Assembly: GCA_002811645.1 (NCBI GenBank)
Contig: PDIP01000083.1
Span: 96,937-160,936, forward strand
Direction of reading: 5' to 3'
Source: Corallochytrium limacisporum Hawaii
Taxonomy: Eukaryota > Protista > Pluriformea
Length of the DNA: 64,000 bases
In this document: positions 11,401 to 63,253 of the stretch, in pieces
Numbering within the stretch: the stretch's first letter is position 1
Layout of the letters: each line of letters opens with the position of its first letter
Position numbers and translations under genes: made by a program
The notes under the pieces: model-generated
Database searches by the model: none
The model's input: the letters and a program-made list of their open reading frames with translations, nothing else
Told to the model about the DNA's origin: nothing

Positions 11401-11752
11401 TAGATGTTTCACGTCTTGGGTGCTTAGAGATGATGGGCGTGTGTAGGACGGTATTTTACTACTCAGTTCTACGGTGCGTTTCGTTCCTATAGGGGGAAGC
11501 GCGGAACCGATGGTTGCTATTCTTGGTAGGGAGTTGACTTGGTGTGGTGTTGGGAGTCTAATTTCCTACACCACGTCTGCACGTACCGTGCGCAGTGCGA
11601 ACAGACTGTGTTCGCGAGCGGACTTACGAAGCCATGTGTTGATTGCTGATGGTTGGTGTGTATTAATATCTACAATGATTCGTGCGATGCCAAGTGAACG
11701 TGGGCGCATGGCGATTATGCGGGTAATGTGTTGATACAGTAAGAGAGTTCTT

Positions 11753-13995: not shown

Positions 13996-15550
13996 TGTGG
14001 TGCTTGGAAAACAACTCTTGTCCTCCAGACGATTATCTCTTTTTTCCCTTGGTGTTGCCTTTGTGAGAATTTCATTCAGTGCGGCTCTGTCCAGTGTAAC
14101 CCTGATCACGAAATAGGTGTGGGGGGCACAGAGAGCACAGAGTCGCGACTCTGAACCATGCAGTGCCTTGCGCAGTTGTGCAACACAGTACGGAACAGAA
14201 TCCTGCACCTACACGCGCACCACCCCTAGTCCTGGATATTGGCACCCAGGTGAAAGCATGACAGTGGACCCATTGTCATACGATCGACTGGCTGAGTCTG
14301 TCCTGTGTACTTCCCCTGTGCGCGCCGGACCGAACCCCCCCTTTCGAAATGCAAACTGACGACTACGCCCCTTTCAGTCCAATAGGGCACAAACTGGGCC
14401 GCCTATCCTCTTCAGCCGTCGGACGTGTCGTACGAGGCCGACCGAACAATAATACGCCCGCCAAGCCCCAAGAAAGCAGCGGGAAACACCAGGCAGGCAA
14501 AGCGGTTGCAAACAGTTGCAAGGGGAAAAAAACGACGAAAAGACAAAAAAGAAAAAGTGTGGACATTTTGAAGAGAACGCAACGGGGGCGCTCTATCATT
14601 TCACGCCCGACCGCAGCCCAAACCCGGCCGGGATGCCGCGCCGTTGTGTGTGTGTGCCCAAAGCGGGAAGTAAACCTGTCATTTTTGTCCCGGTGCCGCG
14701 CTTCTGCCACCGTCGAAGAGCCAAACGGCCCACACCCCACCGAAGGTGGAGGCGGTGGAGTCCAAGCACCACACACCACTGCAGTATATCAGGCCTTGTG
14801 TATGTATCAGGCAGGGAGTGAGGGAAGGGAAGGGAAGAGAAGGGAGGTGGGGGGGGGGGGGTAAAAAGGGGGAAGCATTCGATCGTCCGAATCATTGCGT
14901 GCCTTCGAGAAATGGGGCGGCTATTTATAGTTCGTCTCGTGCTCGCTTGTCCCAGAAAATCATCTAAATCTTCATAATCATTAATCAACAATCCAATTTA
15001 TATCAATGGTGTGCAATCGTGCCCAAAGATCAATGAAATATATCCTCGAATCAGGACGAGCGTTCCCCGGGGTTTAAACAGGAGTATATGTACTATTTTT
15101 TCGCCAATATCACTGCCTGGTACATTTGTACCGGGCAAACCGATGTCACTCTTTCGCGTATTTTGCTTTTTGGCCATTTTTGCGCTAATTTTACTTCTTC
15201 GCCCTTTTCTTCCGTTTTTTTAAAAGCTTTTCGGGGCACTTTTATGTATTTTCTTTGGAATTTCTTCCGTTGTTTTTCCTTTCTCCCTTTGCCTTTTTTT
15301 CTCTTGTGATGGACAATCCATTTTGTGCCTTTTCAACCAAAGTGCATAGGAAATCAATCGCAAATGAAAACGACAAGCCTTTAAAAAAGTTTGTCGCCAG
15401 CGAAATAAAACAAAGGAAACGGAAATGGAAAAAAGGGGGCTTTGCAAAAGAAACAAACCAAAGGTGAACATAAAAAAGGAAAAAAAATAGTTAAGAAAGG
15501 AAGAGAGAGATGTTTTTAAGTTCTTCCCGGTGCCATTCTGGTGAACTGGT

Positions 15551-21834: not shown

Positions 21835-22787
21835 ACTCTTATCCAACCGCGACCCTTTCCAGACAAAATCTTTTGAAAAAGGCTTGTGAATAGAATGCAC
21901 AGCTTCCTATGTATGATCCTTGTCCTGCCCGCGACTGATTACACCAGACCACCTGCATCTAATGTACCTTGGCGATCTACTCAACAGGAACAATAAGCAG
22001 GAACGTGGAGAGTAACTAAGACCAGCGATCTTCGTCTAAGCAACAGCAAAGTCTCAAGCATCACATCAAAGACGGTACACGACGGTTAAAGCGCCAAGCA
22101 CATCGGATCCTACCGGATGGCAGCAGCCAGGTCTTCAGTTCTCAGGCGGAGTGGCCGTGTTTGCTCTGGTGGCACAAGTCTCCCCAATGGCACTCGCACT
22201 TGGCCGGAACGAGGGGAGGTTTGGAGAGTGTGAGTGCACACAGTCTAAAACTGCTGGGCTTTTTCTTCACCCCCAGAAAAGCCACATCACTAACAAACGC
22301 AGGCAGAACCCGTTCGGACCGAGAGCAACGGTATAGTTAAAGTATGAATTATAAGGGCACAACAGGCATGCAACGCAAACCCCACCCTTTCTTCTGACGA
22401 GACAGACGGCAAGAACGCAGTAAACCGCGGGGCCGTAGCGGAGTGCCCGTCTGAACGGGGGGAGTCCCCCATAGGGGTTGGGTCCGTGTGCGGGACAACC
22501 CCCCCCCCCGCGGCTTCCCTTCCTCTCTTCCCCTTTCCCTAACACACGATATACAAGCGGCGCGAAAAACTCATGTAAAGAAAACAGACTCGCGATTCTC
22601 TCCCAGGTGGGGAGGGGAGTGCTCTGAGGAGAAGGGCTCGCTCTTGATTCGAAAAGTGACATATTTGACCGAGGTTTCCATAATTTGAAATATATTCAGA
22701 ATCAAAATATATTTTATATGTAAAATGGCTGAGTAAAAAAGCCTACGTATTCAATATATTTCCCAGTGGTGAAACTATGACAATATT

Positions 22788-42046: not shown

Positions 42047-42574
42047 TTACAGCCAGAGAGCAACCACAGCACCCGCAGATGCTGCGAGCATGCTGACAGT
42101 AACACCTGACGCAGAGTTCCCATCGCCATTCGCGCCGTCCGAATCACCAGAGTCGGGACTACCACTGTCAGGCTCTTCAGCCTCGGGGACAGAACTGTCA
42201 GGATCATCAGCCTCGGGAATAGAAATATCAGGATCATCACCAGTTACCTCTTCAGGAAGCACCGTTACCTGTACTAGCTGTCCAGCAGCGCAGTGGTTAC
42301 CGACATCACACGCAAAGAAGTGAACACCCGCAGAGAGTTCAAGCTCAACCCTCTTGCCAGAGTCGGCCGCCTGGACAGTGCGTATGGTGTCGGTGGCAAA
42401 ATTGCAAGACATCGAGCTCATTTCTAGCAGGGAATGGAAGCTACGCCAGAAAAACGTTATCTTTTCACCCTCCGTAATGACAATAGGATCGAAACCGGGA
42501 CCAGGAACCCAAAGGACCTCAACATTGGCACTGGCTGCAACAGCCAAGGCGACGATTGCAGTGAAGTACTTCAT
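42047..42574 (-). CDS. Secreted, probably GPI-anchored phytocyanin-like cupredoxin (stellacyanin-type ligand set)
   Basis: ATG at 42574 (track start is TTG); signal peptide MKYFTAIVALAVAASA; His in FHSLLEM; FFACDVGNHCAAGQ (Cys, His, axial Gln); acidic D/P/S stalk; NSA followed by a hydrophobic tail. Confidence 0.85.
   Translation of the reverse strand: MKYFTAIVALAVAASANVEVLWVPGPGFDPIVITEGEKITFFWRSFHSLLEMSSMSCNFATDTIRTVQAADSGKRVELELSAGVHFFACDVGNHCAAGQLVQVTVLPEEVTGDDPDISIPEADDPDSSVPEAEEPDSGSPDSGDSDGANGDGNSASGVTVSMLAASAGAVVALWL
42164..42239. repeat. 30-bp tandem repeat (~2.5 copies) encoding the cupredoxin stalk
   Basis: Encodes DDPDISIPEA / DDPDSSVPEA / EEPDS. Confidence 0.85.
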
Positions 42575-43762
42575 ATTCAAAATGTTTCATAAAATTTCCT
42601 CTGATTATGGTCCAGTAGCCGGCTGCGGAGGTTCAGTTTAAACTTTCGTTTAAATACCTCCTGTGCAAGATCAATTAGATCGCATACTGATGTGCCACAC
42701 GATCCAACTTAGTCGCTTGTGTTTCCAAACCTGGCTGTTTCATTGTCCTCTTGTATTTCCAAAACTAGTCAATGACAAACAGACGTTCTTCTTCTCTTAA
42801 TCTTGCCCCTGTCCGATCGGTATGGTGCCGAACGAACAGTCATGGATCGGAAAGAGACACCAACATTACTTATTACAATCCGCAACCCGCTCAAGCCCTA
42901 TTCCTTTCCCCCCCCCGGCCCTGCGCGACCCGTGCTCACCTCTCACCGCCACCACTGGAGCGGCCATGGGCGCCGCTGAACGTTTGGCGTACGGGTCGCT
43001 CCACTACCACCACTGCCCTTGTTCACTCAAGTTTGATATGACACATCTCGGAATGCTACCAGGACCTTGTTTGTACCGGATCTCAACCGGTCTCCCCCGT
43101 TGTTTCGGCCGGGCAGTGGAGACTGTGATACAAATATAGCGATGCCGGGAGATGAGTCAAACGAATGATGCGCCTAGAGATCTACCGGCCTTGTTGACGA
43201 AGGTAGGAAACAAAACACATGCCCACGCATATTAGAATATACGAACACTTTCATCATCCTGGAGACATCGCCACAAACCATGCTGTGGAAGGCAATCCCT
43301 GTTCTTGTGCTTTGTTCAGCAGGCCGTTTATCGGCTGACACAAACGTGGTACCGGAAGACCTTGCGGTGAGAGGGCCAAAAAAACGAAACCTTCTCTTTC
43401 TTGGAAGCTTCGAAGGGAGAGAGCACCAAAACAGGCGGGCCCGGTTTCCCGTTCTTTCTCCTTTTATGAGGAGACCACGAGCACGGTAGTGAATGTACTT
43501 CAGAAAATTTCTTCGTTCGAACGATTCCCAATTCAGGTCGTTAGACAGCCCGTTTCGGCAGCAGGGGAGCGGGGGAAGGGGGTGGAGGACACGCCTTTGG
43601 TGGCAGTGGCTGCCGCCCTAAGTCAAGGTCGTTTTGGTACACGCTAACTCTGCCTTGAACCCTGCTTTGAAGGACATTCTTCTTTAATTAGTGTTAGTGA
43701 TGTCAATGCTGATTCACAACGACTCTGATGATGATGATTGACCATGTAAAGGATGAATGTGC

Positions 43763-45278: not shown

Positions 45279-48200
45279 TCAGATACCGTCTGGTGGTCGG
45301 TGAGCAGGGCCATTGGTCGGGTTTCCACTGGTGGAGGCGAAGTATGCCTCCACCATCCTCGCTCCTGGCTGCCTGAGATCGGCAGCCATCACAGTTGCAC
45401 CGTACCGACGGCTCATGCCCAAATCGTCGGGCTGTCCACCGGTCGCTGTAGTGGGACGCTGCGGATCGTTGACAGGACGGCCCAGGTCGTTTAATGGAGA
45501 ACCGTCGCGATGGTGGAATGACTCTACGATCGCATCATTGTCATGCTCACCACCGGTCATTTCGTTCTCATTTTCGTCCACAGTCGGGGCGAGGGGGATG
45601 CCACGCGTGGCCTCAAGACTCCAGGAGGCGTATTTAGAGTCGTTCCACGTCGGGATCCGCTCGCTGTGTGGCTGATCTGTGGCGGAGCGAATGAGCTGTT
45701 CATGTTCGTTGGTATACCGATCGAAACCAAACTTGCCTTGCACAAACTCGCGCAGTACCAAACCCAAGTCACGACGGCGCTTCTTGGTCTCCTCCTTGCA
45801 CATTTCGGCCCACAAGGTCTCAGGACCCTGAGCAATTAGCTCTCGCAGAGTCACATCACCGCCCAGAACATCAAGGTCCTTGGTCATGGCCAGAACGCTC
45901 ATGATACCTTCAGCTAGAGTGTGCGAGTCTGCAGGTGGCACAACACGGCCAATGATGCGGTTCTGCAAATCCGTCAATACCTCCTTGGTGCCACCGACAT
46001 CGGTGCAGACAACGGGCAGGCCGGCCAGACCAGCCTCACCCACCGCCAAGGGCAGACCCTCAGTGAAGCTGGAGTTGATAAACAGCCACCCAGAGGGCAG
46101 GACCACCTGCGGGTTTCCGAGACCCATGAGGAAGACATTCTTTTGCAAGCTGAAATTGGCAATGGCCGTGCGGCAGCGCTCGACGTAACCTGGATCGGAG
46201 TTGAGACTGCCATAGATAAAGAGCTTGAAGCCAGACAAACCGTAGGTCCAGACGATGTAGGATGCTGCAGTAATGGCGTTGATGACATCCTTTACAGCAT
46301 TCACGTGACTCAACATGACAGCACAAGGAGTGGGATATTCCAGTTCAGGGGCTGGTTTGAAACGACTCACATTCATGCCATTGGTGACGGCAGCAATCTT
46401 GCGGCGAGCGTTCATCTCGAGCTCTAGGCTGCCACCACGCAGGCCAGCCATCCATGTCTCCCAGTCCGGATTCAGGAAATTTGTGCATGGACACAAAATA
46501 TCCGCATTATAGTAAGATATCATGTTACCTAGTCGCTCCAGGCCCAAATGCGCCTGGCGGATGAAGCGGCTGCTGCGGGCGTAGATGAAACCGTGCAGTC
46601 GTTCGCGCCAGAGAATGCCGTGATCCCAAATGACCAGTCGACTTCCGGTCAGACGGCGGTGTGGGACGGCATAACAAGCTGTCTGCAAACCGTGATGGCT
46701 GGCGTGCAGTTCCTTGCCAGGAGCAACAAGCGGTATGGCGAAAGGAGTGAGCAGATGGCTGTACAGCATAAGCGTTTGACCCAGATCCGCGAACGAGGGC
46801 ATTTCACTGGGCATGAGCTCACCACTGCGGATCGCTTTCTGCATATGGGCAGTCCACTGCTCAGCGTAGGCCCGGTGCACCAGACGGTGCGACCATGTGG
46901 CCTTCCAGTCATGCTTCTGGAACCAAATAAACAGACCGACAAAAGTCTGTGAGTAGGACTCAAGGCGTTCGGCCAGCGATGGGTTGCCATCAGTACTCAG
47001 GTCATCAAAGCAACCGGCAAGAAGACCACCGAGCAAGGGCAGGAACTCGGATTTCATTGACTCTTCGCTAATGTGCAATTGGCGCAGGCCGATCTGCAGA
47101 TGCGTCTCGTTGCTCCACAAAGAGTTGGGCATAGCATCGTCGTGGACGGACCATAGCGGTGCAATGGTGACGTCCGTGACGTGCTTGAGGATCTGCAGAC
47201 CCGGAGTAGTGTTGCAGGCGTCGTTAGCGACCTCAGCCACGCCGAACCACGCAACGCTTTCAATGTTATCCACCAAGTCGCGACGACAGTTACTGACACC
47301 ACCACCTGCCATCGGCCAGGTACCAGAGTCGACATTAATGGCATCCACCGTCCCGTCAGTCTTAAACTGCTTGATGAAATCACGGTCGATCCCGTAGTAA
47401 CCACTGGCGGCCAAATACTTCATGTCCACACGAAGATGGGTACGTGCCTTGGGACCCTGGTCCATTTCCAGCACAGCCAGCATCTGCGTGCGACGCACGC
47501 GGCAAATTCTGCGGACGTACTCCATACGACCCTCGTCACGAAGCTTCAGGAGCTTACCAACTTCAGAGCGGCGCAGCAGATTAATGTCAACGTGACGCGC
47601 AAAGACACCATCAATGTCGCCACGGCGCCACGCACGCCATAAATGATTGCGCTTCTCCCGTAGCGACAGGTCACGGAACGGGAACACGTAGCACAGGTCT
47701 ACAGGATCCTCCTTCTCTTCCATTGCTGCCAGGTTCGGGTTGCTATTCTTGTTGAGCGACATCAAGCTGCCCGCTCCTTTCCACATTCGGGACATGAGGC
47801 TCACGTTCGAGGTGTATATGTTCGCAGAAGATTTGGATCTGCTCTCATTTTCTTTCTTCTTCTCGTCCTTACTCTTCTTTGGTAGTTCGGCCCAGTCCAG
47901 GACTCCAAAGCGGCGATGGCGGATGTTGAACTTCCATTGTGTCCATTGACTTGGCTTCACATGCAAAGGCAGACCTGCCAACAGGTCGAGGCTGCCCATG
48001 CGGTGCTGCCAGAAAGTGTTGTCTGCAATCTTGACAAAATCCAAAAGGGCTTTCGGAGGCTTGATCTCATCACAGTCGGTGACGAAGGAGTGGTTTAAAT
48101 GGAGATCCAGGTATTGGAAGTCACGGTTCAAGGTTTCCCGGGGACTCTTCTTCTGTGGTGAGACGTACCGGCGGGAAAAGCAGCGCCACTGGGGTACATC

Positions 48201-51200
48201 GTGAGCCTGGAACTTGATGAGCACCAATTCCTCGCCAGTAAGGTAGCCACGCCAGGCAACTGTGTGAATAGGTTGGTTTGGATAGTCGCGGAAACTATGG
48301 TACTTGATCTCCATGCGACCGAGTTCCCTGAAGTGGAGTGCCTTCCCTTCCACACTGGCATCTATGTGCTCGTATTCGGCTGTCTTTTCCGCCTTCTTTT
48401 CGTCCGAGCGTGAAGAACCCCGAGCTCGCCGGCCCTCATTCTTCACACGGCGCTTCACCGTCCAAAGAACACTCTGAATACGCCATTCATTGACGGCTTC
48501 GACGTGATCGCGCTCGTTACTATAAGACACATGACCGGTGAGCAGGGCATCTGTGATCAGTTCGTCTGTTTCACTTTTGACAACTCCATTTGCGGGCATT
48601 GCCGTCTTGAGTTCAATGAGCTTGATGTGCCCATCGTCAGTGTACTCAAAGCAACTAGTGGGCTCTGCACGACCGGGGTGGATCAAATTGCTACCTGGGT
48701 ACGTCTCCACCCGAGAGAGGTACATGTTCTCATCGTGTTCCTTTGGTACTTTGTAGCCAAAGAAGGTCGTGCAATTACCGTTCAGATCGCGTCGAATCAG
48801 TGGCTTAGCCCAACCGGCATCCGCCATATATGTCATGCGACCCCGAAGCTTCTGGCCCTTCTGAAGCTCAGGGCTCGGGCATTTCTTGCGGGCTTGTGTC
48901 TTGTCTACAACATCGCTCACACGCTCTTCTACACGGAACGTCGTGAGGTTCTTCAGCGCGGAGCTTCCCATGCTCCACGGGAAGAATTCGCGGTGGATGT
49001 CCGACTTGGGGTTTGCCTTGAGGACGTCCCTGCTGCGGGCGTCAGCATTGTCTAGGGAAATGTCGTCCACTATTACAATCTCGACCGAATCTGCACCCGT
49101 GAAGGTCTCCAAACCGTGCAGGACGCCGCTCACAGAGTCCCAGTACGCGCGCTTCAGTGCGCCGTGATGCAGGAAGCGCTGTAGAGCCCGGATACCTGGC
49201 ACACGACGGCCCGTAAGGGACTGGGTGATTTCGTAGCGAAGCATACGACTGTATCGGTGCAGCCACAGCAGGAAAACACTCCAGGCAATGCTGATGTCAA
49301 ACAGAATGCTTGGTCTCTGGAATCCCGTTCGGTGGGCATGCAGTGCGGGTCCAAACCGCTCGTCACCACAGGCAGCGAGGTAGGTGATAATCCACCAGCT
49401 CTGAATGAAGGAGTAAGACCAAACGTTGATCAGCTCCTTTTCCGGAATATCTTCCATGAGTGTGCTCTCATCAAGATGGAACAGACTATCTTCCTGACTT
49501 TTCTCTGGTGTTGTGGGCTGGATTTCCAAAGGCATTTCGCTGGTGAACCCTTCGGTGGAGTCACTGACGGGATTAACGCTGCCGGTATCGGGTTGCTGCT
49601 TCTCTCCCATACCATTGCTGTGTCCTGGGAAGTCAACAGTAACATGCCGGCCGGGGCTGTCAACTCCCTCAAAGAAATCGAGGTCTTCAAATTCATCAGG
49701 CTTCAGAAGTAGACGGCAAGCATCTACATCAGCGCGGGCGTGACCCAAGATCTGGCTGAAGCCTACTGGGATCACCGTACGGCGAAGTGGACGGTTGCTG
49801 ATCAGGCTCGCCAGGTTGATCGCCAAGTGAATGCGAATGGATGCACGGATAACCTGCTGACGGATTTCTCTCTCGTCCCTGTATCCGGTAATGGGCAGAA
49901 GCAGACGATTCATCAGTTCAAATTCATCAGTGGCAGTGTACTTCATCATAGGCAGCGGAGCCTGCGCTACAATCGTGCGCAGGGCCTTGGCGACAATACG
50001 ATGTTCCGTGTGAGTCATCCTACTCCAATGAGAACTCAAATCCGCTCCCTCGTGTTGCAGGGAAAGCGCGTTGCGCATAATTGCAGAAGCTGTGCCGAGG
50101 GCTAGCTTGTCAAAGACAGCCTGACTCAGATCCGCAATTTCGTTTAGCATGCGCGTGGGTACTGGTCCACGCTCGGCTGAGAACTCCTCCGGGATAGGCA
50201 GTGACAGACAGGCTTCCAGTGCGACGGCGTCATGATGTGTGTACTTCAAGACTTCCTCGACGTACTCGTGCAGAACAGCCTCGGCCATGGCCTGGGGAGT
50301 GCAAACCACCGATGTGTTGATGATGACGTGTAGTGAGACACCGCCGCCATCCACCTCAGTGATTTGGGCACTCGCAGCACCATGGGTGCCCTTCAGAATG
50401 TCACGAGTGGTGTAGACATGAATCGATTTGCCATTCCACTGCTCGAGGCACTCGGCCACAATCTGACGCCAGTCGGGGAAGGCCTCGGTAGTCAACCGCT
50501 CCCAGACAGCAATGTGGTTTCTGTGGATACCTTCCACGGCCTCATGATCATAGAATGGCACTTCCTTGGACTTGTAGAAGACTTGGGCAATCTTAACACC
50601 GAGCTCATCCTCATTTGGGTCAATGTGCGTGGACGATTTCAGCAGTTTCCACATGTTGTCACTCTGCAGAAGAGCCAAGCGCCGTAGAGAGCGCGCATGA
50701 TTGCCATCGTGGCTGATGAGATGCATACCAGAAGTCTGCAGACGACGATCCAGCGTGATATCGTCAATATCCATAATGGTACGCAGGGACAGATACATCA
50801 TGCCAGCGGCGAAGATCCAACTGGCCATGAGCACTGAAACGGTGTAACCAAAGTTTTCATCAATGCCAATAATAAGAAAACCCATAATCAATCCAGCAAT
50901 GATGGCAAAAACCATAACTAGCAGGACGGGTGAATCCATACCTGCCACAAAGACCTTATGATACAAACCGACCAACAGGGCAGTGTATCCTACAACCAAA
51001 ATCAGGTAGAACATGACCGCATTCTTTGTGTCAGCGTCGCTGTCCAAGCTTAGAAGCATACCCGCTCCTGCGACTACAAAGCCGATGCACATAAAGAAGA
51101 TAAGTCGATACAGACCTTCTTTGTACTGAATCATCTTGCGCTTCAGGAAAAATAGCCGCAGCTGATCTGTGCCCTTTTGTCCGTGAATTTCGTGGTTTTC

Positions 51201-54200
51201 GAGCAGCAACGGGTCATTGGTGATGAAATTATTTGAGTCGATTGGATTCAGATCAGTGACCGTCGCCAATATGACCTCGAAAGTGGAAGCCACTATCAGC
51301 AAATAAAGCACAGCCCAGGTACTGCCATGGATGAAGCCCTCATTAAGGTCAGTTCCCTGGGCACTGAAGAAGGCCGGGGGATTGCCGCGGAAGATGCTCA
51401 ACCAACGATCCACAAAAATGATCATGAAGTAAAGGATACCGTATGCGGTGGCCCGATAGGCTTCCGGGGCGAGTAGATCACCACGCGGCTGTTGCTCTGC
51501 GGACTTCTTGTTCTTAATACGTGTCAAGCCTTGGCCCACCTGGGCATTCCAAATGTCGCCGAAAGGCATGACGTCTCCGCCCATGTGTGCCAGAGCACGG
51601 ATCAGAGCTTCATCACGGTACTGGCTAGCACGGTTGCGTACCACAGAGTAGGTGTCACCGAGTTGTTGCAGCTGAGGTGCACGCTGGTAACCAAAGTATT
51701 TGCCAACGTAGGGTAGTTCCTGGTACCACTTGCGGGTCGTTTCGTCGAGACAGAGCACAGTAAAGGTTAGGCGGGCCGCACGCTCCCACCGCTTCTTTTC
51801 TTTGTCGTTCTTGTATGTCTTTCCGCCCAACTGCTCGTACAGATTGTAGATATCTGTTTCTTTGGTCATGTGAATCCGGTTCGGCAGTGCATACCAGTTG
51901 CTGAGCAGACGAGGGTACAAAAACGTGTAGATGAGACAAGTGGAGGCGAGAGCTATTACGTAAATCAGGGCCAGAAGCCAATTTCGCGGGTCGGATGTCT
52001 TGGTATTGGCAACCTCATCGGAGGGAATACCCGTGATCTCCTCACTGGCAAACGTGGCCAAGAAGAAGGCCACCAAAAGCGGGGCCGAACCCAAGGTACC
52101 CACCAAAGGACCTTGTGAAAGGAACAGAGTTCCCTCCCAGCGGATCAAAAACAGGGTTGCAAACAGGAACAAATAGATACCAAACAGACATGACCAGATG
52201 ATAGCGAATGGCAAGTCCGCTGAATAGTCTATGTCGTCAACAACAGCAATGCAGATACCAGCTGTCAGGATCATGGCTACGGTAATCGTGTGTACACCAA
52301 AGACGAGACCACGACTGACCTCGTGAGCCACAATGGAGGGGGAGTGTTGGTACTTGTAGTAGGCAATGTTGACGGCACCCGAGTTGACCAAACCGCCCAT
52401 CAAGGTAAACGTGACGATCAGTGCAACGTTGACACACGCACTCAGGCTTCCCGTGAACGAACCCGAACTGAAGATACCATGACCCACGAAACTGTTGAGG
52501 ATAATGTCAACCGCACCGGGTAAGCTGAAGTAAAGACCACTCACACTGAGACCAAACACCTTGATCACCTTGGCTTTGCGGTTCTCTAGTCGCCGAACAT
52601 CGGATACCTCTTCCATAGCTGTGGAGACTTGCACGGCAGCTTCCAAACGCAGACTGTGGTACAACAAACGGGCAAACCGGTTCATGGGCACACCAAATAG
52701 AGTCATGGCAATGGGGGCACCGCGTGTAGTCTCGAGGGCCACGGCAATCTGATCTGGCTCTGCCATGGGGACCTCCACTTTGCGGAAAACATCAAAAGTC
52801 AATTCCTCTAGACACAGATTCCAAAAGGCATTGCGGAATGTCAATTCAAGCAAACGGGCCGCCGCGCTGGTGTCCTCACGCAACCGACCGAGAAAGACAA
52901 AGAACGTCTTGCGCCTTGCGTCCTCAGTGAGGGCCTTGTGCCAAATGTACAATGCAGTGTTTTCAACGCTGAACACATTACCCTTCATGATGCGACTGAC
53001 ATTGCGTTCCGCAAAGTTGTATGCACCAGTCTCCTGAAGCACACTCATCTGTGCAAAGTGGCCAATGTGATCATAGCATGAATAGACCCACGCCCGGAGA
53101 GCCTTGTGGTCATTGTCATTCAGCCCCCACTTGTAGAAATGTCCCTTACGAGAACTCAGTACAGAAATGTCGATACAGCCTTTCGGTGTTAATCCATTCA
53201 CCTCGTCTATCCACCGCTTGGGTACGCACATAGTATCCTGGTCGGTTTGAGACAGCTCCATACTTGCAGCCAATAGAGCCAGGGCCGGATGGATACCCTG
53301 GTGCAGCAGTAGAAGCTCCGCGACGTGCACAATTTTGATGGAATCACTCACCGGCAAAAATATGTGGTAGCGAGAGTCCCCTTCGATGTACAATCCAACA
53401 CCGTCCAAGATTGGGGTCACGGTGCCTCCTGATCTAACTTCAAGTTTCATGTTCATCATAGTGCTCTTGTGCATCATTACAATCTCGATGTTGTCATTTA
53501 GAACCATTTCCATGGCTTCTTCGAGACCATACTTCAACTCCACAATACTCTGCTCCGTCAGAATCCGCGAATATTTGCTGTTCACATCACTGATAGTGCT
53601 CATCACAAATTTGTAGTATTCCAAGATTGCCTTGCAGCTGGTTGTCAAATGGGTGGGTTCACGGTCAACTCCACTCTCCTTGACTTCCCTCTCATGTTCT
53701 GACCGTTCCTGCTGCAAAGGGAAGCGCACGATCTTGCGCTTGCACAAGTCCGTTAGAGACATCCGCAAGCGTGTGCCATCCTCATCGCTGACCCCATCCA
53801 TTGATAATGGCATCAGGAAATCCACGACCTTCTTACGGCTAGTGTTCGTCTCTCTGGCAATCGCTGACTCGTAGTTCGGTCCAAGCCTTTCTGCCAACGG
53901 CATGGTCGGAGCCATGTCGTGCCGGCCATTCTTGTACTCTTGGTAGATCTTGGGAGGAATCCTGGCATCTTTTCTCCCGTCCACTTCCCGTGGATCACGC
54001 TTTACGTATCTGCCCTTCGGTGCGTCCTCACAGAACAAAAGCATTTGATTGTACTCATCCAGGCGATGCTTCAGCAACGGTTCTGTAATTTCCCGATCGT
54101 TGCGAAGCGTCTGCATGGCCTGGTCCCATGATTCAGTGATTTCGTCACGGGTGGGTATATCCATATGTTCCGCGACGTACAGCAAATCCATGACCACAGG

Positions 54201-55511
54201 CTCCTTCGAGCATTCCACAGCACCCACAAATTCAGATCCAAGACGGCTCTTTGACGAATCCACAGGCTGCAAGAATGTACCATCGGGAGCGACATATCCA
54301 ACAAAGTTGTTGTGCTTCAACCAGCGGCTAAAGGACATGGTAAGCTGAATGGGCAGATTAGCACCAGAAAAGTCAATGATGAACGTTTGGAAGTCATTCC
54401 GAATGCTCTGTTCGCTGCTGAGGCCAGCCACAGCAGTGTCGAAGCGCTCCTTGCGCATTCCAGACCGAATCAGCAGCTCACCTTTCTCAGTCATCACCGC
54501 ACCGTGACCAACCACACCGTTGATAGCATCTCGAATCAGCGGGAAGATACCAATGGCACCCTCAATGATGATGACCGCTTCGGGCAGTGCATTTCGAACC
54601 AAAACGATAAGATCAGCAATATCACCCGTGGTCATGCCTGCTTCTGCCAACGCGTCAATACCCCGAATGAAAATACCATCAAAACATACAACTGATACCA
54701 AATGGTTCACATAGCTGCGCAGGAAACGAACCCTTTCGTGTCGTACCTCTGTCCGTGGCTTTGTATTCGCAAAGATCACCGTCATGTCCACCTCAGTGAT
54801 TACGTATGCAGCTGCCAGAAGCAAATCCTGCTCGATGTTGGTCTCAATCTCCAGAATGCGGCGCTTGTGGAAAGCAGGTCCGTCGCGCATGTTTGAAGTT
54901 GGGGCGGCAGTTGTAGCCGATACGAGGCCTCCAACGTGGGCCGTTCGTGGCCTGGAGTCCTGATTGGCAAGGACTGGATCCATGCAGAATTCGGGAAAGC
55001 TCATCGGACTCTGGAGAATTAGAAGATCTGGTAAGCCTTCACCATCCACCAGCAAATTTGATGGGTTACCGCGGAAAATGCCAACGCTATTGACCCGTTC
55101 GGCGTTGAAACTGTTAGCACTCGCGACGGGCACCAGAACGCTCTCTGCCGCACCCAAGTAGTCTGTGGTTTTGGCGTGCCCAGTGCTCAGGAAATGCTCC
55201 TGACGGGCACCGAAGGTCACCGTCTTATCAAAGTTGGGTGCGCTTTGATAGGCCACGTTCTGTTCCATGTCGTCGTCAAATATATCAGCCTCCGCTATGG
55301 GTTCAACCAATGCCTGTGTCGTGACTTCCAAACCCTCCTGTGTGAATTGTTGGCCCGTAGCTGCCTCTGCGATCCGCACTGCATTGCCCAGTTTCTTCAT
55401 ATCTACGGTCAATTTCCGTGGATCGACCTTGTAATTGCGGTACGCCATTGCGACACCACCAATAAGGGCAATGCCCATGAACACGAGCAGGATAATCAGC
55501 GCAGTGTCCAT
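45279..55511 (-). CDS. Giant multi-TM GT4 glycosyltransferase, Gtb3/PelF-like putative exopolysaccharide synthase (~3410 aa)
   Basis: ATG at 55511 (track start is GTG). N-terminal TM, degenerate TIM-barrel-like region, two multi-TM blocks (~52560-50770), DSGTWPMAGGGVSNCRRDLV, HASHHG, VIWDHGILWRER, VMLSHVNAVKD, GT4 E-x7-E motif NSSFTEGLPLAVGEA, VVCTDVGG. Confidence 0.88.
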   Translation of the reverse strand: MDTALIILLVFMGIALIGGVAMAYRNYKVDPRKLTVDMKKLGNAVRIAEAATGQQFTQEGLEVTTQALVEPIAEADIFDDDMEQNVAYQSAPNFDKTVTFGARQEHFLSTGHAKTTDYLGAAESVLVPVASANSFNAERVNSVGIFRGNPSNLLVDGEGLPDLLILQSPMSFPEFCMDPVLANQDSRPRTAHVGGLVSATTAAPTSNMRDGPAFHKRRILEIETNIEQDLLLAAAYVITEVDMTVIFANTKPRTEVRHERVRFLRSYVNHLVSVVCFDGIFIRGIDALAEAGMTTGDIADLIVLVRNALPEAVIIIEGAIGIFPLIRDAINGVVGHGAVMTEKGELLIRSGMRKERFDTAVAGLSSEQSIRNDFQTFIIDFSGANLPIQLTMSFSRWLKHNNFVGYVAPDGTFLQPVDSSKSRLGSEFVGAVECSKEPVVMDLLYVAEHMDIPTRDEITESWDQAMQTLRNDREITEPLLKHRLDEYNQMLLFCEDAPKGRYVKRDPREVDGRKDARIPPKIYQEYKNGRHDMAPTMPLAERLGPNYESAIARETNTSRKKVVDFLMPLSMDGVSDEDGTRLRMSLTDLCKRKIVRFPLQQERSEHEREVKESGVDREPTHLTTSCKAILEYYKFVMSTISDVNSKYSRILTEQSIVELKYGLEEAMEMVLNDNIEIVMMHKSTMMNMKLEVRSGGTVTPILDGVGLYIEGDSRYHIFLPVSDSIKIVHVAELLLLHQGIHPALALLAASMELSQTDQDTMCVPKRWIDEVNGLTPKGCIDISVLSSRKGHFYKWGLNDNDHKALRAWVYSCYDHIGHFAQMSVLQETGAYNFAERNVSRIMKGNVFSVENTALYIWHKALTEDARRKTFFVFLGRLREDTSAAARLLELTFRNAFWNLCLEELTFDVFRKVEVPMAEPDQIAVALETTRGAPIAMTLFGVPMNRFARLLYHSLRLEAAVQVSTAMEEVSDVRRLENRKAKVIKVFGLSVSGLYFSLPGAVDIILNSFVGHGIFSSGSFTGSLSACVNVALIVTFTLMGGLVNSGAVNIAYYKYQHSPSIVAHEVSRGLVFGVHTITVAMILTAGICIAVVDDIDYSADLPFAIIWSCLFGIYLFLFATLFLIRWEGTLFLSQGPLVGTLGSAPLLVAFFLATFASEEITGIPSDEVANTKTSDPRNWLLALIYVIALASTCLIYTFLYPRLLSNWYALPNRIHMTKETDIYNLYEQLGGKTYKNDKEKKRWERAARLTFTVLCLDETTRKWYQELPYVGKYFGYQRAPQLQQLGDTYSVVRNRASQYRDEALIRALAHMGGDVMPFGDIWNAQVGQGLTRIKNKKSAEQQPRGDLLAPEAYRATAYGILYFMIIFVDRWLSIFRGNPPAFFSAQGTDLNEGFIHGSTWAVLYLLIVASTFEVILATVTDLNPIDSNNFITNDPLLLENHEIHGQKGTDQLRLFFLKRKMIQYKEGLYRLIFFMCIGFVVAGAGMLLSLDSDADTKNAVMFYLILVVGYTALLVGLYHKVFVAGMDSPVLLVMVFAIIAGLIMGFLIIGIDENFGYTVSVLMASWIFAAGMMYLSLRTIMDIDDITLDRRLQTSGMHLISHDGNHARSLRRLALLQSDNMWKLLKSSTHIDPNEDELGVKIAQVFYKSKEVPFYDHEAVEGIHRNHIAVWERLTTEAFPDWRQIVAECLEQWNGKSIHVYTTRDILKGTHGAASAQITEVDGGGVSLHVIINTSVVCTPQAMAEAVLHEYVEEVLKYTHHDAVALEACLSLPIPEEFSAERGPVPTRMLNEIADLSQAVFDKLALGTASAIMRNALSLQHEGADLSSHWSRMTHTEHRIVAKALRTIVAQAPLPMMKYTATDEFELMNRLLLPITGYRDEREIRQQVIRASIRIHLAINLASLISNRPLRRTVIPVGFSQILGHARADVDACRLLLKPDEFEDLDFFEGVDSPGRHVTVDFPGHSNGMGEKQQPDTGSVNPVSDSTEGFTSEMPLEIQPTTPEKSQEDSLFHLDESTLMEDIPEKELINVWSYSFIQSWWIITYLAACGDERFGPALHAHRTGFQRPSILFDISIAWSVFLLWLHRYSRMLRYEITQSLTGRRVPGIRALQRFLHHGALKRAYWDSVSGVLHGLETFTGADSVEIVIVDDISLDNADARSRDVLKANPKSDIHREFFPWSMGSSALKNLTTFRVEERVSDVVDKTQARKKCPSPELQKGQKLRGRMTYMADAGWAKPLIRRDLNGNCTTFFGYKVPKEHDENMYLSRVETYPGSNLIHPGRAEPTSCFEYTDDGHIKLIELKTAMPANGVVKSETDELITDALLTGHVSYSNERDHVEAVNEWRIQSVLWTVKRRVKNEGRRARGSSRSDEKKAEKTAEYEHIDASVEGKALHFRELGRMEIKYHSFRDYPNQPIHTVAWRGYLTGEELVLIKFQAHDVPQWRCFSRRYVSPQKKSPRETLNRDFQYLDLHLNHSFVTDCDEIKPPKALLDFVKIADNTFWQHRMGSLDLLAGLPLHVKPSQWTQWKFNIRHRRFGVLDWAELPKKSKDEKKKENESRSKSSANIYTSNVSLMSRMWKGAGSLMSLNKNSNPNLAAMEEKEDPVDLCYVFPFRDLSLREKRNHLWRAWRRGDIDGVFARHVDINLLRRSEVGKLLKLRDEGRMEYVRRICRVRRTQMLAVLEMDQGPKARTHLRVDMKYLAASGYYGIDRDFIKQFKTDGTVDAINVDSGTWPMAGGGVSNCRRDLVDNIESVAWFGVAEVANDACNTTPGLQILKHVTDVTIAPLWSVHDDAMPNSLWSNETHLQIGLRQLHISEESMKSEFLPLLGGLLAGCFDDLSTDGNPSLAERLESYSQTFVGLFIWFQKHDWKATWSHRLVHRAYAEQWTAHMQKAIRSGELMPSEMPSFADLGQTLMLYSHLLTPFAIPLVAPGKELHASHHGLQTACYAVPHRRLTGSRLVIWDHGILWRERLHGFIYARSSRFIRQAHLGLERLGNMISYYNADILCPCTNFLNPDWETWMAGLRGGSLELEMNARRKIAAVTNGMNVSRFKPAPELEYPTPCAVMLSHVNAVKDVINAITAASYIVWTYGLSGFKLFIYGSLNSDPGYVERCRTAIANFSLQKNVFLMGLGNPQVVLPSGWLFINSSFTEGLPLAVGEAGLAGLPVVCTDVGGTKEVLTDLQNRIIGRVVPPADSHTLAEGIMSVLAMTKDLDVLGGDVTLRELIAQGPETLWAEMCKEETKKRRRDLGLVLREFVQGKFGFDRYTNEHEQLIRSATDQPHSERIPTWNDSKYASWSLEATRGIPLAPTVDENENEMTGGEHDNDAIVESFHHRDGSPLNDLGRPVNDPQRPTTATGGQPDDLGMSRRYGATVMAADLRQPGARMVEAYFASTSGNPTNGPAHRPPDGI

Positions 55512-56248: not shown

Positions 56249-56452
56249 NNNNNNNNNNNNNNNNNNNNNNNNNNNNNNNNNNNNNNNNNNNNNNNNNNNN
56301 NNNNNNNNNNNNNNNNNNNNNNNNNNNNNNNNNNNNNNNNNNNNNNNNNNNNNNNNNNNNNNNNNNNNNNNNNNNNNNNNNNNNNNNNNNNNNNNNNNNN
56401 NNNNNNNNNNNNNNNNNNNNNNNNNNNNNNNNNNNNNNNNNNNNNNNNNNNN
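56249..56452. other. Assembly gap within a G-run-rich tract upstream of the GT4 gene
   Basis: N run flanked on both sides by GGG clusters. Confidence 0.95.
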
Positions 56453-59469: not shown

Positions 59470-60234
59470 TCAGTCAGAGTGTACAAAGGCAGCGGCCTGC
59501 TCGCGGGTCTCAAGCCGGGCCAGGGGTGCCTTGTTCTTGGAGAGCTTGTTCTTGATCATCTTCACAGCAACGGCTCCGATGGTGTCGTTCTGGAAGTGCG
59601 TACCAGACTCATCGTAGTCAGAGGGCCGGACGACCCAGTTGCAGATGCGGATTTCACCTACTCCGACGTTGTGCTTGCCAGTAGCGCGATCCGCGTCTGC
59701 CTCAACGCGAGCGGCCCGAAGGATTGCGCCCACAGAGGCACTTGCGACATGGAACAGGCTCAGTTTGGGATCCGGGCAAGATTCACTCAGGGCTCCTGTG
59801 ATGAAAAGGTACATGGATTCATTACCCGACGGAGGTTTCGACAGCAATGACATGAGGTAGCGCCAGCCGTAGAAATGAGGGAACGCGCGAGAACGGAACA
59901 CAGTGTCGAGCTCAGCACCGGTGGATTCACTCAGAGTTTGCCCTGACCAGAAGGCACCAAGGGAGCAGGTGACGTGGTGGAAGGTGCCAAGGTCCCCATC
60001 CAGACCCGACAGAGCGTCCGCCAGCTTTTTGCCGTCCTCTTCAGTTTGTGTGCTGTACCCCGTCATGATCTCAATATCACCGCTAATATGAGAAATATCA
60101 TGCTGCAGACGATCCCGGGCAGTCTCGGAGCGGACGGGAGCAATGACTCTGTAGCCATCTTCCAGCAGAGCCTTGACGATGCCGCTGCCAACAATACCAC
60201 TACCACCTAGGACAAGAACGGTTTCCTTTGTCAT
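59470..60234 (-). CDS. Atypical short-chain dehydrogenase/reductase (NAD(P)-binding Rossmann fold), 254 aa
   Basis: ATG at 60234 (MTKETVLVLGGSGIVGSGIV, GxxGxxG); VIAPVRS (basic residue suggests NADP); HVTCSLGAFW; YLFITGA; no YxxxK at the catalytic helix. Confidence 0.85.
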   Translation of the reverse strand: MTKETVLVLGGSGIVGSGIVKALLEDGYRVIAPVRSETARDRLQHDISHISGDIEIMTGYSTQTEEDGKKLADALSGLDGDLGTFHHVTCSLGAFWSGQTLSESTGAELDTVFRSRAFPHFYGWRYLMSLLSKPPSGNESMYLFITGALSESCPDPKLSLFHVASASVGAILRAARVEADADRATGKHNVGVGEIRICNWVVRPSDYDESGTHFQNDTIGAVAVKMIKNKLSKNKAPLARLETREQAAAFVHSD

Positions 60235-61336
60235 GTTGCTTGAATTTTGTGTTAAACCAATTAAAACTAGGATTACAAGTGAGCACACTCCCTTTCATTC
60301 TGGTCTTGAGGTCCCAAGTAGCTGCAAGCCCACCAAATCACTCACGCCCGACACTGGCTTTTGCCTCCCTTGTCGACCAATGTTCCTGGAGGGGGGCCAC
60401 CTGGCCGACCAAGTAGGGCGTTCGGTATAGTGAATGTATTGCGTATCTTGCCCCTCGCAGTTTGCACAAGTTTTTCCCGAAAGATTTCCGGGAAGTAACA
60501 ACTTCATCGCCTCCCGCTTGCGGGCGCGTCTGACTATGGAGCACGGTCTCCCAAGCTCGAAAGCCCGACCAGGGGTGAGAACTGAGGGGCCCAGTTTTCT
60601 CCCGCACGGCCGTGTCTGGAAGACTGTGACCCGTGTACCCACCCGCTAAGCAGCCCTGATTCCTATGGGATCCAGTTGATCGTCTGATTTATGTCACATT
60701 GTATGTGAAACAGGAGTACTTTATGGGAAAAGGAAATCAAAGCAAAACTGCTTATAGATATATTGCATTTACTGTAAATCATTCACTACAATCAAAGTGA
60801 TCAAATCGACGACCTCCGTTTTGCGGGAGAGTGGGACAAGGGGAGTAGGAACGACCCCAGTCTAAAGCGAGGGGAGAACGCAGGGGAATAGGGGAGGAAA
60901 ATGCAGGAGGGTGGGGATCGGATTTGAAGGGGGTTTCAACGCACCGCAAATGCACTCAGAACGGAGAGCGAACCCGGTTCATTCGGGGTAGAAACCCGGT
61001 GTGCGCAGTGTTCGGAGGGACTAGAATCGCGTGGGTTGGCCTTGCGGAATCCAGGGCGGGTTTCACAGAGGCTAGTCGCCCGGCGCTTCATCCATAGACA
61101 TGCTATTTCAGGGACGTATGATCTCATTGTGGTGCTTGCTTGCAATGCCTCAAATCGTCTCTGTTGCCTGAGCCGCCCTAATTCGAGCTTTCATCCTTGT
61201 ACACAATATACCAAATACGTTTCATCTACCATGACTACAAAAGTAAAGGCTTCGACGACAGATTTCCATTCTGAAAATATTTCTTTACTCACCCAGGATG
61301 ACGATACATCCCACATGAGACCTTTACTCCTACTGT

Positions 61337-63253
61337 CTAATTGAAGTGAACTGTCTGGATCCAGGAGGTGTGATATCTGACCATTCGCTTCGCGACTTTG
61401 CGCCCGTTGCTTACTGCCCGGACACTGGCAGCCCCGCTTCCTGATGCTGCGTACCCAGGAGTTTCGTAACACAGCAGTGCGCGAGTCAGAAGCGTCGAGG
61501 GCAATGCCTTGTCCTCATCATTATGTTCGTAGAAAAGGCAGAATTGTACCACCGCCTCTGAAGTCTTGCTCACCTTCCGCACTGCCATGGTCACAGCTGT
61601 ACCTGTGCGATCAAGTGCTACCGTGGCGCCACCGCTTCCAACTGGCGTTCTCGCCAAAGTTTTATTGCCAAGCGTCGTAGATTCGAATGCTGTTGGTCGC
61701 CTGGCCAGGCGCAGTGAACAGTGCACGTTTGTGACCAGCACATCGTCGGGGAGCGTAGATGAAAGAACCAGAGTGAACTTAAATCCAGTTCTCTGCTTTG
61801 TCGGGACATTTTCATTGTTGCTATCTGCATCTTTGTTCTGCTCTGTAGGCCCCACCTTCGTCTCCTCGACGTAGCGTTCCAGCAAAAGTGCGGGCGACGG
61901 CACAGTGCCCGTGTCGTCTTGGAGGGCACGGAACCGCATAATCGTCTCCGTCTCGTGAGCCCTGACTTCGGCTGTGAGGGTGCCGTCGGTGTAAAATGTA
62001 TCGAGCGCAGTCACACACGGCCCAAAATGCACTGCTCCGGCGCCAGAGAGTAGGAGTTGGGGGGCCGCTGTTGGTAAGGAAGTATGATCTCCGCCAGTAC
62101 TGTCCTTAAAGCGGAGACTCACGGCCACGGGCACGAAGCTCGAGTTGCGAGCACTGACGGTTCCTGTGATGGTCCGGCGCAACGAGCGGTTGTCATCGCC
62201 CGCGGGAACTTTGAGATCGCCACTTTCGTCCTTTTGCATGTCAGCGTTTGGGGCATCAGCTGCACTGTCCTTCTTTCTGCGTTCCGGTCCCGACGATGAC
62301 GGTGAGGATTCACGGATAACATCGTATGCATTTCGCCGTGGTTCGTCCGATGCACCCTCGTCGTCGGGCTTTGAGTCCCATTGTCCCTGCCTTTGCTGCG
62401 ACTGGTGCTTCAAATTCTGTACAATGACGCACCTTTCTTGCCATTCCAAGTACAGTGCTCCGTGCTGTAGCGGTGAGGTGTGCGGTAATGATCCCTGCTG
62501 GGACAGCGGCGCTTGAGCATCTGCTTTGTTCTGCAGCTGCGTTGGTGACGACGAGGGGGACATGGTCTGCGGATGCTGAACACTTTTTGACACGGGTTCT
62601 GGACCAGGATGGCCTTCGATGTCAAGCAGGACTGTGTGCAGTGCGCTTTGCGGTACACCCAAGACGAACGCATGGTCCAGGAGCTCACTAAAGAGCGGAA
62701 CGCAAGTTCGGAGAGCAGCGAGACGGATCTCCTGTAAGCGTGGCTGTGATAGCTGATCGCGCACTCCTGGCCTTGCAGGATGATGTGCAGGCATTGATTG
62801 TCCCTTTCGACGTTCTACAGTGCTCAACAAATTGCCCAGGATTACAGCACACTCCCGGACCACTTCGCTAGCCTGCAGATGACTAGCATTTTCTCTCCTC
62901 CCTTCTGGTGTTGGTGACCAGTTCTCTTTCTCAACCTCCCTAGATTGATCAGTGTCGATTAGTACCAAGAGAGCTGCCACATCCGCAACATTTTGAACTA
63001 TAAACACCAGTTCATTGTCTGTGTCGCTTCTGCTAGTAACAGGCAACGCTCCAAGTCTGCTGAGGTGACGCAGCCGTTCCGCGGAGTCCTTTGGAGCTCC
63101 CGCAAGGGACGGCAGCAACGATCGACTGTTGGCTTTAAGCGGGTCATACTGCCACTCTGGAAACGCATGATCATAGTCCCATCCTCCAAGGTGCCAATGC
63201 TCGATCACTTCTGCCGTCGGCAACGAGACCAGTTGCATGCCCAGGAGGCGCAT
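61337..63253 (-). CDS. Divergent adaptor-complex medium (mu) subunit / mu-homology domain protein, 638 aa
   Basis: LFSELLDHAFVLGVPQ resembles the mu N-domain motif (I/V)YELLDE..DFG.PQ. The C-terminal YETPGYAASG..SVRAV..RMVRYHT resembles the MHD ending FE.P.F..SG..VR.L..WVRY.T. The ORF is secure and the family call is moderate. Confidence 0.6.
   Translation of the reverse strand: MRLLGMQLVSLPTAEVIEHWHLGGWDYDHAFPEWQYDPLKANSRSLLPSLAGAPKDSAERLRHLSRLGALPVTSRSDTDNELVFIVQNVADVAALLVLIDTDQSREVEKENWSPTPEGRRENASHLQASEVVRECAVILGNLLSTVERRKGQSMPAHHPARPGVRDQLSQPRLQEIRLAALRTCVPLFSELLDHAFVLGVPQSALHTVLLDIEGHPGPEPVSKSVQHPQTMSPSSSPTQLQNKADAQAPLSQQGSLPHTSPLQHGALYLEWQERCVIVQNLKHQSQQRQGQWDSKPDDEGASDEPRRNAYDVIRESSPSSSGPERRKKDSAADAPNADMQKDESGDLKVPAGDDNRSLRRTITGTVSARNSSFVPVAVSLRFKDSTGGDHTSLPTAAPQLLLSGAGAVHFGPCVTALDTFYTDGTLTAEVRAHETETIMRFRALQDDTGTVPSPALLLERYVEETKVGPTEQNKDADSNNENVPTKQRTGFKFTLVLSSTLPDDVLVTNVHCSLRLARRPTAFESTTLGNKTLARTPVGSGGATVALDRTGTAVTMAVRKVSKTSEAVVQFCLFYEHNDEDKALPSTLLTRALLCYETPGYAASGSGAASVRAVSNGRKVAKRMVRYHTSWIQTVHFN

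Follow-up and report, generated by a model that had tools for sequence, protein, structure and literature searches.

The synthase gene and its genomic setting

The window, the whole 64,000-nucleotide stretch of Corallochytrium limacisporum DNA analyzed here, carries a giant gene for a predicted Gtb3-family GT4 synthase at 45279..55511 on the minus strand. As the earlier note had claimed, it is a single 10.2 kb open reading frame: one intact, intron-free exon reads from an ATG at 55511 to 45279 with 0 internal stops and encodes 3410 amino acids. Contigs from two public runs of 2015, guessed to be RNA, span 45300-51200 with neither gaps nor joints; in both runs they stop near the synthase stop codon. 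An end point of this kind is what a transcript would give and suggests that the gene is expressed. Comparison of the synthase with a second sample revealed 20 differences, 11 silent and 9 non-silent, with 0 stops and 0 indels. The pN/pS between the two samples is therefore 0.24 (binomial p of 0.002 against neutrality), suggesting that the gene is under purifying selection.

The synthase is neighbored by an endonuclease III-like gene, a TBC/GRAM gene and an SDR. Its GC3 (0.61) lies inside the range of the neighboring genes (0.56-0.69), and its overall GC content is also like theirs. An assembly gap (a run of N) at 56249-56452 precedes the start codon by about 740 bases and leaves the ORF untouched. 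Elsewhere in the window, two ABC_membrane_2 (ABCD-type) transporter genes lie close together on the minus strand (6436-8442 and 11566-14208), a small ORF at 42047-42580 has a weak plastocyanin-like match (E of 0.005), and two ORFs of 794 and 638 amino acids (19516-21900 and 61337-63253, respectively) have no Pfam match.

A non-fungal, holozoan host had been proposed from the flanking genes, and this proved correct. The genome (24,109,830 bases) holds exactly two copies of the family, the window gene and a paralog on contig C181, and the latter is 100% identical to EukProt Clim_evm66s152 over the 1374 residues of the fetched locus. A fungal host or fungal contamination was therefore rejected; the host is C. 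limacisporum, a holozoan and not a filamentous ascomycete.

Domain organization of the predicted protein

The C-terminal part of the protein holds a PelF/Gtb3-type GT4 (GT-B) module, placed by Pfam and NCBIfam profiles at residues 2611-3285 (45657..47681, minus strand), with a DUF3492 lobe (46500-47324, minus strand) and a nucleotide-sugar lobe (45879-46406, minus strand). Such a C-terminal module had been recognized earlier, but the extent then given, 46800-45700, was too small; with the DUF3492 lobe included it reaches from approximately 47680 to 45660. Matches to the GT4 domain exceed the Pfam cut-offs at residues 3062-3211 (PF00534, 53.1 bits; PF13692, 49.7 bits), and DUF3492 lies slightly below its cut-off at residues 2730-3004 (21.6 vs. 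23.3). The best NCBIfam model for the window protein is PelF (NF038011), at 68.9 bits for the whole protein and 74.6 bits for the module alone; the curated cut-off of 100 bits is missed, so that the protein is PelF-like and is not classed as PelF. By E-value, PelF is also the best NCBIfam model for 43/43 scanned family members. Every motif quoted in the earlier note was located within the module: GTWP at residues 2730-2733, GGVSNCRRD at 2737-2745, ASHHG at 2937-2941, IWDHGILWRER at 2961-2971, MLSH..VKD at 3066-3075, and an intact E-x7-E (E3151 and E3159; 46035..46061, minus strand), both residues of which are invariant in the family alignment (A3). With PF00534 and PF13692 above cut-off and the E-x7-E motif in place, the protein is assigned by sequence to the retaining GT-B enzymes of family GT4. 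The window module keeps 95 of the 107 columns that are conserved in at least 90% of eukaryotic relatives; the 12/107 changed columns (vs. 4/104 in the C181 paralog) lie mostly outside the motifs and cluster before the GT fold (residues 2651-2699), together with A2948, R2952 and A3041.

We also folded residues 120-900 and 860-1900 with AlphaFold from family alignments, obtaining a mean pLDDT of 75 and 82, respectively. Residues 974-1586 (50754..52592, minus strand; model pLDDT 81.5) form a predicted 12-helix membrane domain of the MOP superfamily (MATE/MurJ/Wzx), arranged as 6+6 helices with a long insert separating the halves. The top 14 structure matches of this domain are all MOP proteins (MATE, MurJ, WzxE) with Z of 13.5-20.6, the next match reaching 8.1, and MATE transporters outscore the flippases MurJ and WzxE (Z of 13.5-16.4). 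When the domain was used for a language-model search of the ESM Atlas, PelG clusters came first (190 shared features) and PelG was found in 10/10 of the best matches having a family, with a score of 0.85 that, being below the 0.9 level, counts as a lead. PelG itself had previously been predicted to be MOP-like. The window protein has no Pfam match to PelG (PF16933), and profile alignment to PelG over the whole membrane domain was not significant; hhalign against 39 PelG sequences aligned only 24 columns (E of 0.006; reversed control, 0.28), which correspond to the family's invariant F/D motif that opens the second half of the domain. These data suggest that the membrane domain is a PelG-like candidate exporter of MOP fold, PelG being the inner-membrane transport module of Pel (PMC8892547). 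The fused synthase/exporter envisaged in the earlier note thus gains structural support from the modeled MOP fold and from the PelG-like language-model neighbors.

At the N terminus, residues 4-22 (55446..55502, minus strand) form a predicted membrane anchor with a hydropathy of 2.76, followed by basic residues. The N-terminal and internal transmembrane segments recognized previously are thus both recovered, the latter as a hydrophobic cluster at about residues 1020-1550 and as the 12 modeled helices. The anchor has 0 K/R before it and 4 after it, a pattern shared by A. fumigatus Gtb3, and is accordingly predicted to be N-out/C-in, which would place the domain that follows in the cytosol. Together with the 12 further helices, this pattern would also put the GT module there. 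The domain in question, at residues ~135-426 (54234..55109, minus strand), is modeled as a (beta/alpha)8 barrel. Its Foldseek match has an E of 8e-6. Ranked against 48,161 solved chains, it comes closest to the alpha-galactosaminidases PelA, GH191, Ega3 and FsGH114, which take the first six places (Z of 16.0-18.9; next family, 14.1); over all structure comparisons the Z values for these four are 16.0-19.2, with other families at 14.4 or less. According to the model, therefore, the barrel has the fold of the GH114/GH166/GH191 alpha-galactosaminidase group. A weak hhalign profile alignment (E of 4.7e-4) puts Arg283 and His336 at the catalytic Asp/Glu positions, so that by this alignment the Asp nucleophile and Glu acid/base (defined in PMC12054363) are missing, and the corresponding columns are variable across 61 relatives. 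For both reasons the barrel is probably not an enzyme. Sequence searches of PDB and Pfam with the N-terminal and membrane parts yielded no matches.

The membrane domain lies between two copies of a repeated alpha/beta domain, the first at residues ~650-770 (53202..53564, minus strand; limits approximate) and the second at residues 1623-1775 (50187..50645, minus strand). In relatives, the profiles of the two copies match each other with E of 1e-5 to 7e-9. The second copy bears a weak resemblance to zincins but has HExxE where these have HExxH, and its matches to M35 peptidases (Z of 5.7-6.3) are within the chance range. Residues ~1780-2600 (47712..50174, minus strand) are poorly conserved in the window paralog. 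They have no Pfam match, residues 1600-2620 gave no usable ESM Atlas match, and residues 1900-2600 fail to align with relatives by BLAST, whereas the middle region of the C181 paralog does align.

Relatives, paralog and origin

The Gtb3 of the A. fumigatus cluster was recognized beside a GH114 gene and a gene for an Agd3-sized protein of 793 amino acids. It matches the window protein in the GT module (31% identity over 708 amino acids; E of 4e-91) and in the membrane region (21% over 807 amino acids; E of 1.5e-18), and it is matched by an N-terminal profile built without ascomycetes (E of 1e-19). The window protein thus aligns collinearly with A. fumigatus Gtb3, the N-terminal part at the profile level only, and by this sequence comparison belongs to the Gtb3 family. 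The Gtb3/PelF-type assignment made in the earlier note therefore stands, both in these searches, in which DUF3492 came near its cut-off, and in the PelF model being the best for all members scanned. Pezizomycotina family members adjoin an epimerase and a Spherulin4 gene or an Agd3 gene; on the basis of these neighbors and of GH114, we identify the Pezizomycotina matches as Gtb3.

With the C181 copy as query, full-length relatives were recovered from Ichthyophonus, Sphaeroforma and Creolimax, with 54-58% identity in the GT module (Ichthyophonus and Creolimax were recognized by their gene prefixes); many came from chytrids and gut fungi (42-49%), and others from Pezizomycotina (35-38%). Family members were also found in the ancyromonad Fabomonas tropica (P0056), the thraustochytrid Hondaea fermentalgiana (P0029) and, three times, the glaucophyte Cyanophora paradoxa (P0058, P0062 and P0173). 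The suggestion that the family extends beyond fungi is thus right as to the non-fungal host, but Corallochytrium is not an isolated case, given the ichthyosporeans, several unrelated protists and the second copy in the same genome. A 5216-amino-acid Logan protein (P0026) carries an Agd3 deacetylase, EGF repeats, CBM87 and filamin repeats fused ahead of a complete Gtb3-type synthase. In the basidiomycete yeast Naganishia vaughanmartiniae, a Gtb3-type protein (P0119) with a Spherulin4 match on the same record is nested among ascomycetes in the tree, and may represent a second transfer like that of Trichosporon or a merged gene model. Two giant prokaryotic homologs were rejected: that from a Deltaproteobacteria MAG (L030, NYXK01000054.1) looks like fungal contamination, having a HET-domain neighbor and a split frame, and that from a rumen Methanosphaera MAG (L029, SUTP01000071.1) probably belongs to a gut fungus. 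Among prokaryotes, the closest matches are DUF3492-GT4 proteins of actinobacteria, and the one examined sits in an operon with Agd3, Spherulin4, GH114 and epimerases. Profile comparison of the actinobacterial 480-amino-acid membrane proteins with the eukaryotic membrane domain was not significant (E of 0.11-0.25).

When the window protein was compared with 1.84 billion representatives, the C181 paralog came out as its best match. In GT-module identity to the ichthyosporean orthologs, however, the two copies differ, at 54-58% for the C181 paralog and 36-38% for the window copy. The phylogeny of the GT4 module that the earlier note had called for places the window protein inside a giant eukaryotic GT4 clade, apart from bacterial PelF and other GT4 proteins (SH-aLRT 100), its exact place there being uncertain. 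Within this clade the C181 copy groups with the ichthyosporeans (98) and these with chytrids (99), and the window protein forms a long branch near the base. Forcing the two Corallochytrium copies together in this tree was not rejected (AU p of 0.29). In a tree of the membrane domain (30 eukaryotic rows) the two copies are sisters (87), falling within groups of holozoans (88) and of holozoans plus chytrids (99). The branch to the window protein is 3-4 times longer than that to the C181 copy in both trees (1.58 vs. 0.52 in the GT module and 2.45 vs. 0.61 in the membrane domain). Both are quick trees with long branches and SH-aLRT values only, so the support is moderate.

The best reading of these data is that the window gene arose as a lineage-specific duplicate and then evolved fast. 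The sisterhood of the two copies in the membrane-domain tree favors duplication over a recent transfer from fungi. The earlier note had left ancestry and horizontal transfer side by side; ancestry with duplication fits the trees better than recent horizontal transfer. The holozoan-plus-chytrid grouping is consistent with inheritance from an opisthokont ancestor. However, since the proteins of ascomycetes and Bifiguratus group apart from these, old paralogy or transfer within eukaryotes may also have played a part. Two proteins of a second chytrid type, P0135 (Blyttiomyces) and P0139 (Phlyctochytrium), lie nearest to the Bifiguratus and ascomycete group, and their placement suggests two old subfamilies in fungi.

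Proposed function and comparison with known systems

We also examined the genome for partners of the synthase. The five-gene cluster uge3-sph3-ega3-agd3-gtb3 was not found around the window gene, nor among the scanned neighbors of the C181 paralog. Sph3 is required for galactosaminogalactan (GAG) production in A. fumigatus; the search of the Corallochytrium genome for Sph3/Spherulin4 (GH135) gave no match, and the control genomes were blank too. About 18 Agd3_CE (Agd3/CE18) loci are above cut-off, unclustered with the synthases, and 8/8 of those examined retain all four catalytic motifs CM1-CM4 (taken from PMC7229062). On contigs C7, C50, C178 and C240 of this genome (G000), Agd3/CE18 genes of this set lie in local groups of two or three. 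Six GH114-family loci are above cut-off; the catalytic D and E motifs were seen in at least two of them, and the best locus retains both acids in its alignment with Ega3. Three divergent GH114-family loci (C176:374457-375101, C29:32472-33239 and C29:48663-49385) keep a WDG...D motif. A GalE gene above cut-off lies on another contig and has Val at the position of human GALE Cys307, where a small residue presumably permits the use of UDP-GalNAc. The SDR near the synthase (59470-60288) was rejected as GalE, since it has only weak N-terminal epimerase matches and GalE was found elsewhere. The genome also contains three chitin synthase loci, so the polymer need not be the sole wall component.

We think it probable that the window synthase polymerizes UDP-GalNAc, perhaps with UDP-Gal, into an alpha-1,4-linked GalNAc-rich chain and exports it via its MOP domain, and that the cell de-acetylates and trims the product outside. 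The UDP-GalNAc and UDP-Gal would come from GalE. In the cytosol, the C-terminal GT4 module, of retaining type, would attach the sugar by an alpha-1,4 bond. The chain would then cross the membrane through the 12-helix MOP/PelG-like domain of the same polypeptide, and the galactosaminidase-type barrel, probably catalytically dead and cytosolic, would guide or bind it as it grows. Extracellular Agd3/CE18 enzymes could then de-N-acetylate the product to a cationic galactosamine polymer, which GH114 enzymes could trim to yield a wall, coat or adhesive matrix. The reading frame, homology, motifs, predicted folds and partner genes were observed here, whereas the sugar donor, the bond formed, the way of export, the topology, the part played by the barrel and the biological function are inferred. 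Several lines of evidence argue for a GAG-type synthase: the collinearity with A. fumigatus Gtb3 and the family-wide preference for the PelF model, the barrel and membrane folds, each of which independently indicates Pel/GAG components, the Agd3, GH114 and GalE genes of the genome, the actinobacterial operon, the Logan Agd3-synthase fusion, the low pN/pS, and the finding that deletion of gtb3 abolishes GAG in A. fumigatus (PMC9860509). Against it we count that the window copy is the divergent one, with its longer branch and more changed columns, so that its specificity may have shifted; that it misses the PelF cut-off; that the PelG link is below the Atlas level of 0.9 and not significant over the whole domain; and that there is no gene cluster and the Sph3/Spherulin4 search was blank, as were its controls. 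According to older chemistry, the ichthyosporean Amoebidium reportedly has a galactosamine-galactose wall, which would fit the proposed polymer.

The main rival, which strikes us as rather unlikely, is that the duplicate has changed its job: it now uses another sugar (e.g., Gal in place of GalNAc), yields a polymer confined to one life stage, or works mainly with the C181 synthase, as its partner subunit. Such a change would suit the long branches in both trees, the column changes clustered before the GT fold (residues 2651-2699) and at A2948, R2952 and A3041, and a middle region that, unlike the paralog's, can no longer be aligned to relatives. However, the core motifs and E-x7-E are all intact, untouched by any of the 12 changes, and fast evolution by itself is no proof of new specificity. 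We judge it unlikely that the window gene reached Corallochytrium on its own through horizontal transfer, whether the donor was a fungus or another protist, or that it is a very old paralog; either origin would be compatible with a GAG-type function. The closest protein among all representatives searched is the C181 paralog, the membrane-domain tree unites the copies within the holozoan and holozoan-plus-chytrid groups, the AU value allows their union in the GT tree, and the GC3 is that of the neighborhood; these points weigh against the basal, loosely placed position of the window protein in the GT-module tree and the patchy occurrence of the family beyond opisthokonts (Cyanophora, Fabomonas, Hondaea).

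It is also conceivable, though quite improbable, that the MOP domain is a flippase for lipid-linked oligosaccharides, as are MurJ and Wzx, and that the protein builds short units on a lipid or protein acceptor instead of acting as a processive synthase with a channel for the polymer. Processivity is unusual among GT4 enzymes, and MurJ and WzxE are among the fold matches, but MATE transporters score above them, and Pel and GAG are synthase-dependent systems in which PelG is the inner-membrane transport module (PMC8892547, PMC9860509). Finally, the strong divergence of the window protein from every relative might point to a decaying pseudogene, an assembly artefact or a fungal contaminant. This explanation is hardly credible and is already contradicted by the open 10.2 kb frame, by the second-sample differences, more than half of them silent and none a stop or indel, and by ordinary eukaryotic flanking genes of similar composition.

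With the window protein, the Gtb3 family gains a divergent member; the system itself is of a known kind. The GAG cluster is known from Pezizomycotina and Trichosporon, Agd3 homologs also occur in chytrids and bacteria, and a transfer of the cluster from bacteria to filamentous ascomycetes has been suggested (PMC4817252, PMC7229062). That full-length synthases occur in Corallochytrium as well as in three ichthyosporeans, in many chytrids and in unrelated protists implies that the pathway is much older or more mobile. The finding also supplies a candidate for an enzyme that makes the walls of these animal relatives, about which little is known. The present analysis contributes a MOP/PelG-like exporter domain, assigns the barrel on structural grounds, compares the protein directly with A. 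fumigatus Gtb3 and gives evidence for a second synthase that is duplicated and fast-evolving yet selected. According to a 2023 review, Gtb3 had not been modeled, and its export and donor specificity were listed there as open (PMC9860509). Our literature search on Gtb3 with PelG or AlphaFold, which mostly did not extend to subscription papers, returned no title or abstract indicating such an architecture, and searches for a GAG-type pathway in holozoans (Corallochytrium with galactosamine or glycosyltransferase; Amoebidium with galactosamine) found none. The domain map (dead barrel, MOP exporter, GT4) carries over to A. fumigatus Gtb3, the maker of a virulence polymer, and offers defined pieces for expression and assay. 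Corallochytrium is reported to be stably transfectable (10.1101/2020.11.12.379420), which makes the claim for its synthase testable. More tentatively, and with considerable doubt, we propose that Gtb3-type synthases are single-chain Pel machines (PelF-like polymerase, PelG-like exporter, dead barrel as chain binder) already present in the animal-fungal ancestor, that in both Corallochytrium and ichthyosporeans a cationic polygalactosamine is one of the chief polymers of the wall or matrix, and that the two copies split the work, e.g., by donor sugar or life stage. Such a split, if true, would be a natural test of whether one Gtb3 polymerizes both Gal and GalNAc.

Among known systems, the C181 paralog (Clim_evm66s152) has the same architecture and 40% GT-module identity to the window protein. 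A. fumigatus Gtb3 shares with the latter the order of parts, the positive-inside anchor, the GT motifs and the size class (2893 vs. 3410 amino acids). In contrast to A. fumigatus, Corallochytrium is a holozoan with two paralogs and a far larger Agd3 family, it lacks the uge3-sph3-ega3-agd3 cluster, and Sph3 was not found in it (controls also blank); the window protein is nearer to ichthyosporean and chytrid proteins than to Pezizomycotina Gtb3. The actinobacterial Agd3 operons differ in having separate genes (PMC7229062). Bacterial Pel (PelF/PelG/PelD/PelE, with the GH166 enzyme PelA) resembles the window protein in the GT4 module with its DUF3492 lobe, the PelG-like domain and the PelA/GH191/Ega3 barrel fold. 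However, the Arg of the bacterial PelF motif GR..P.KD is His family-wide in the eukaryotic synthases, A. fumigatus included, Pfam detects no PelD-type domain in the window protein, and its barrel, unlike PelA, is without catalytic acids and predicted to be cytosolic. Where bacterial Pel employs separate subunits, the window synthase is one polypeptide.
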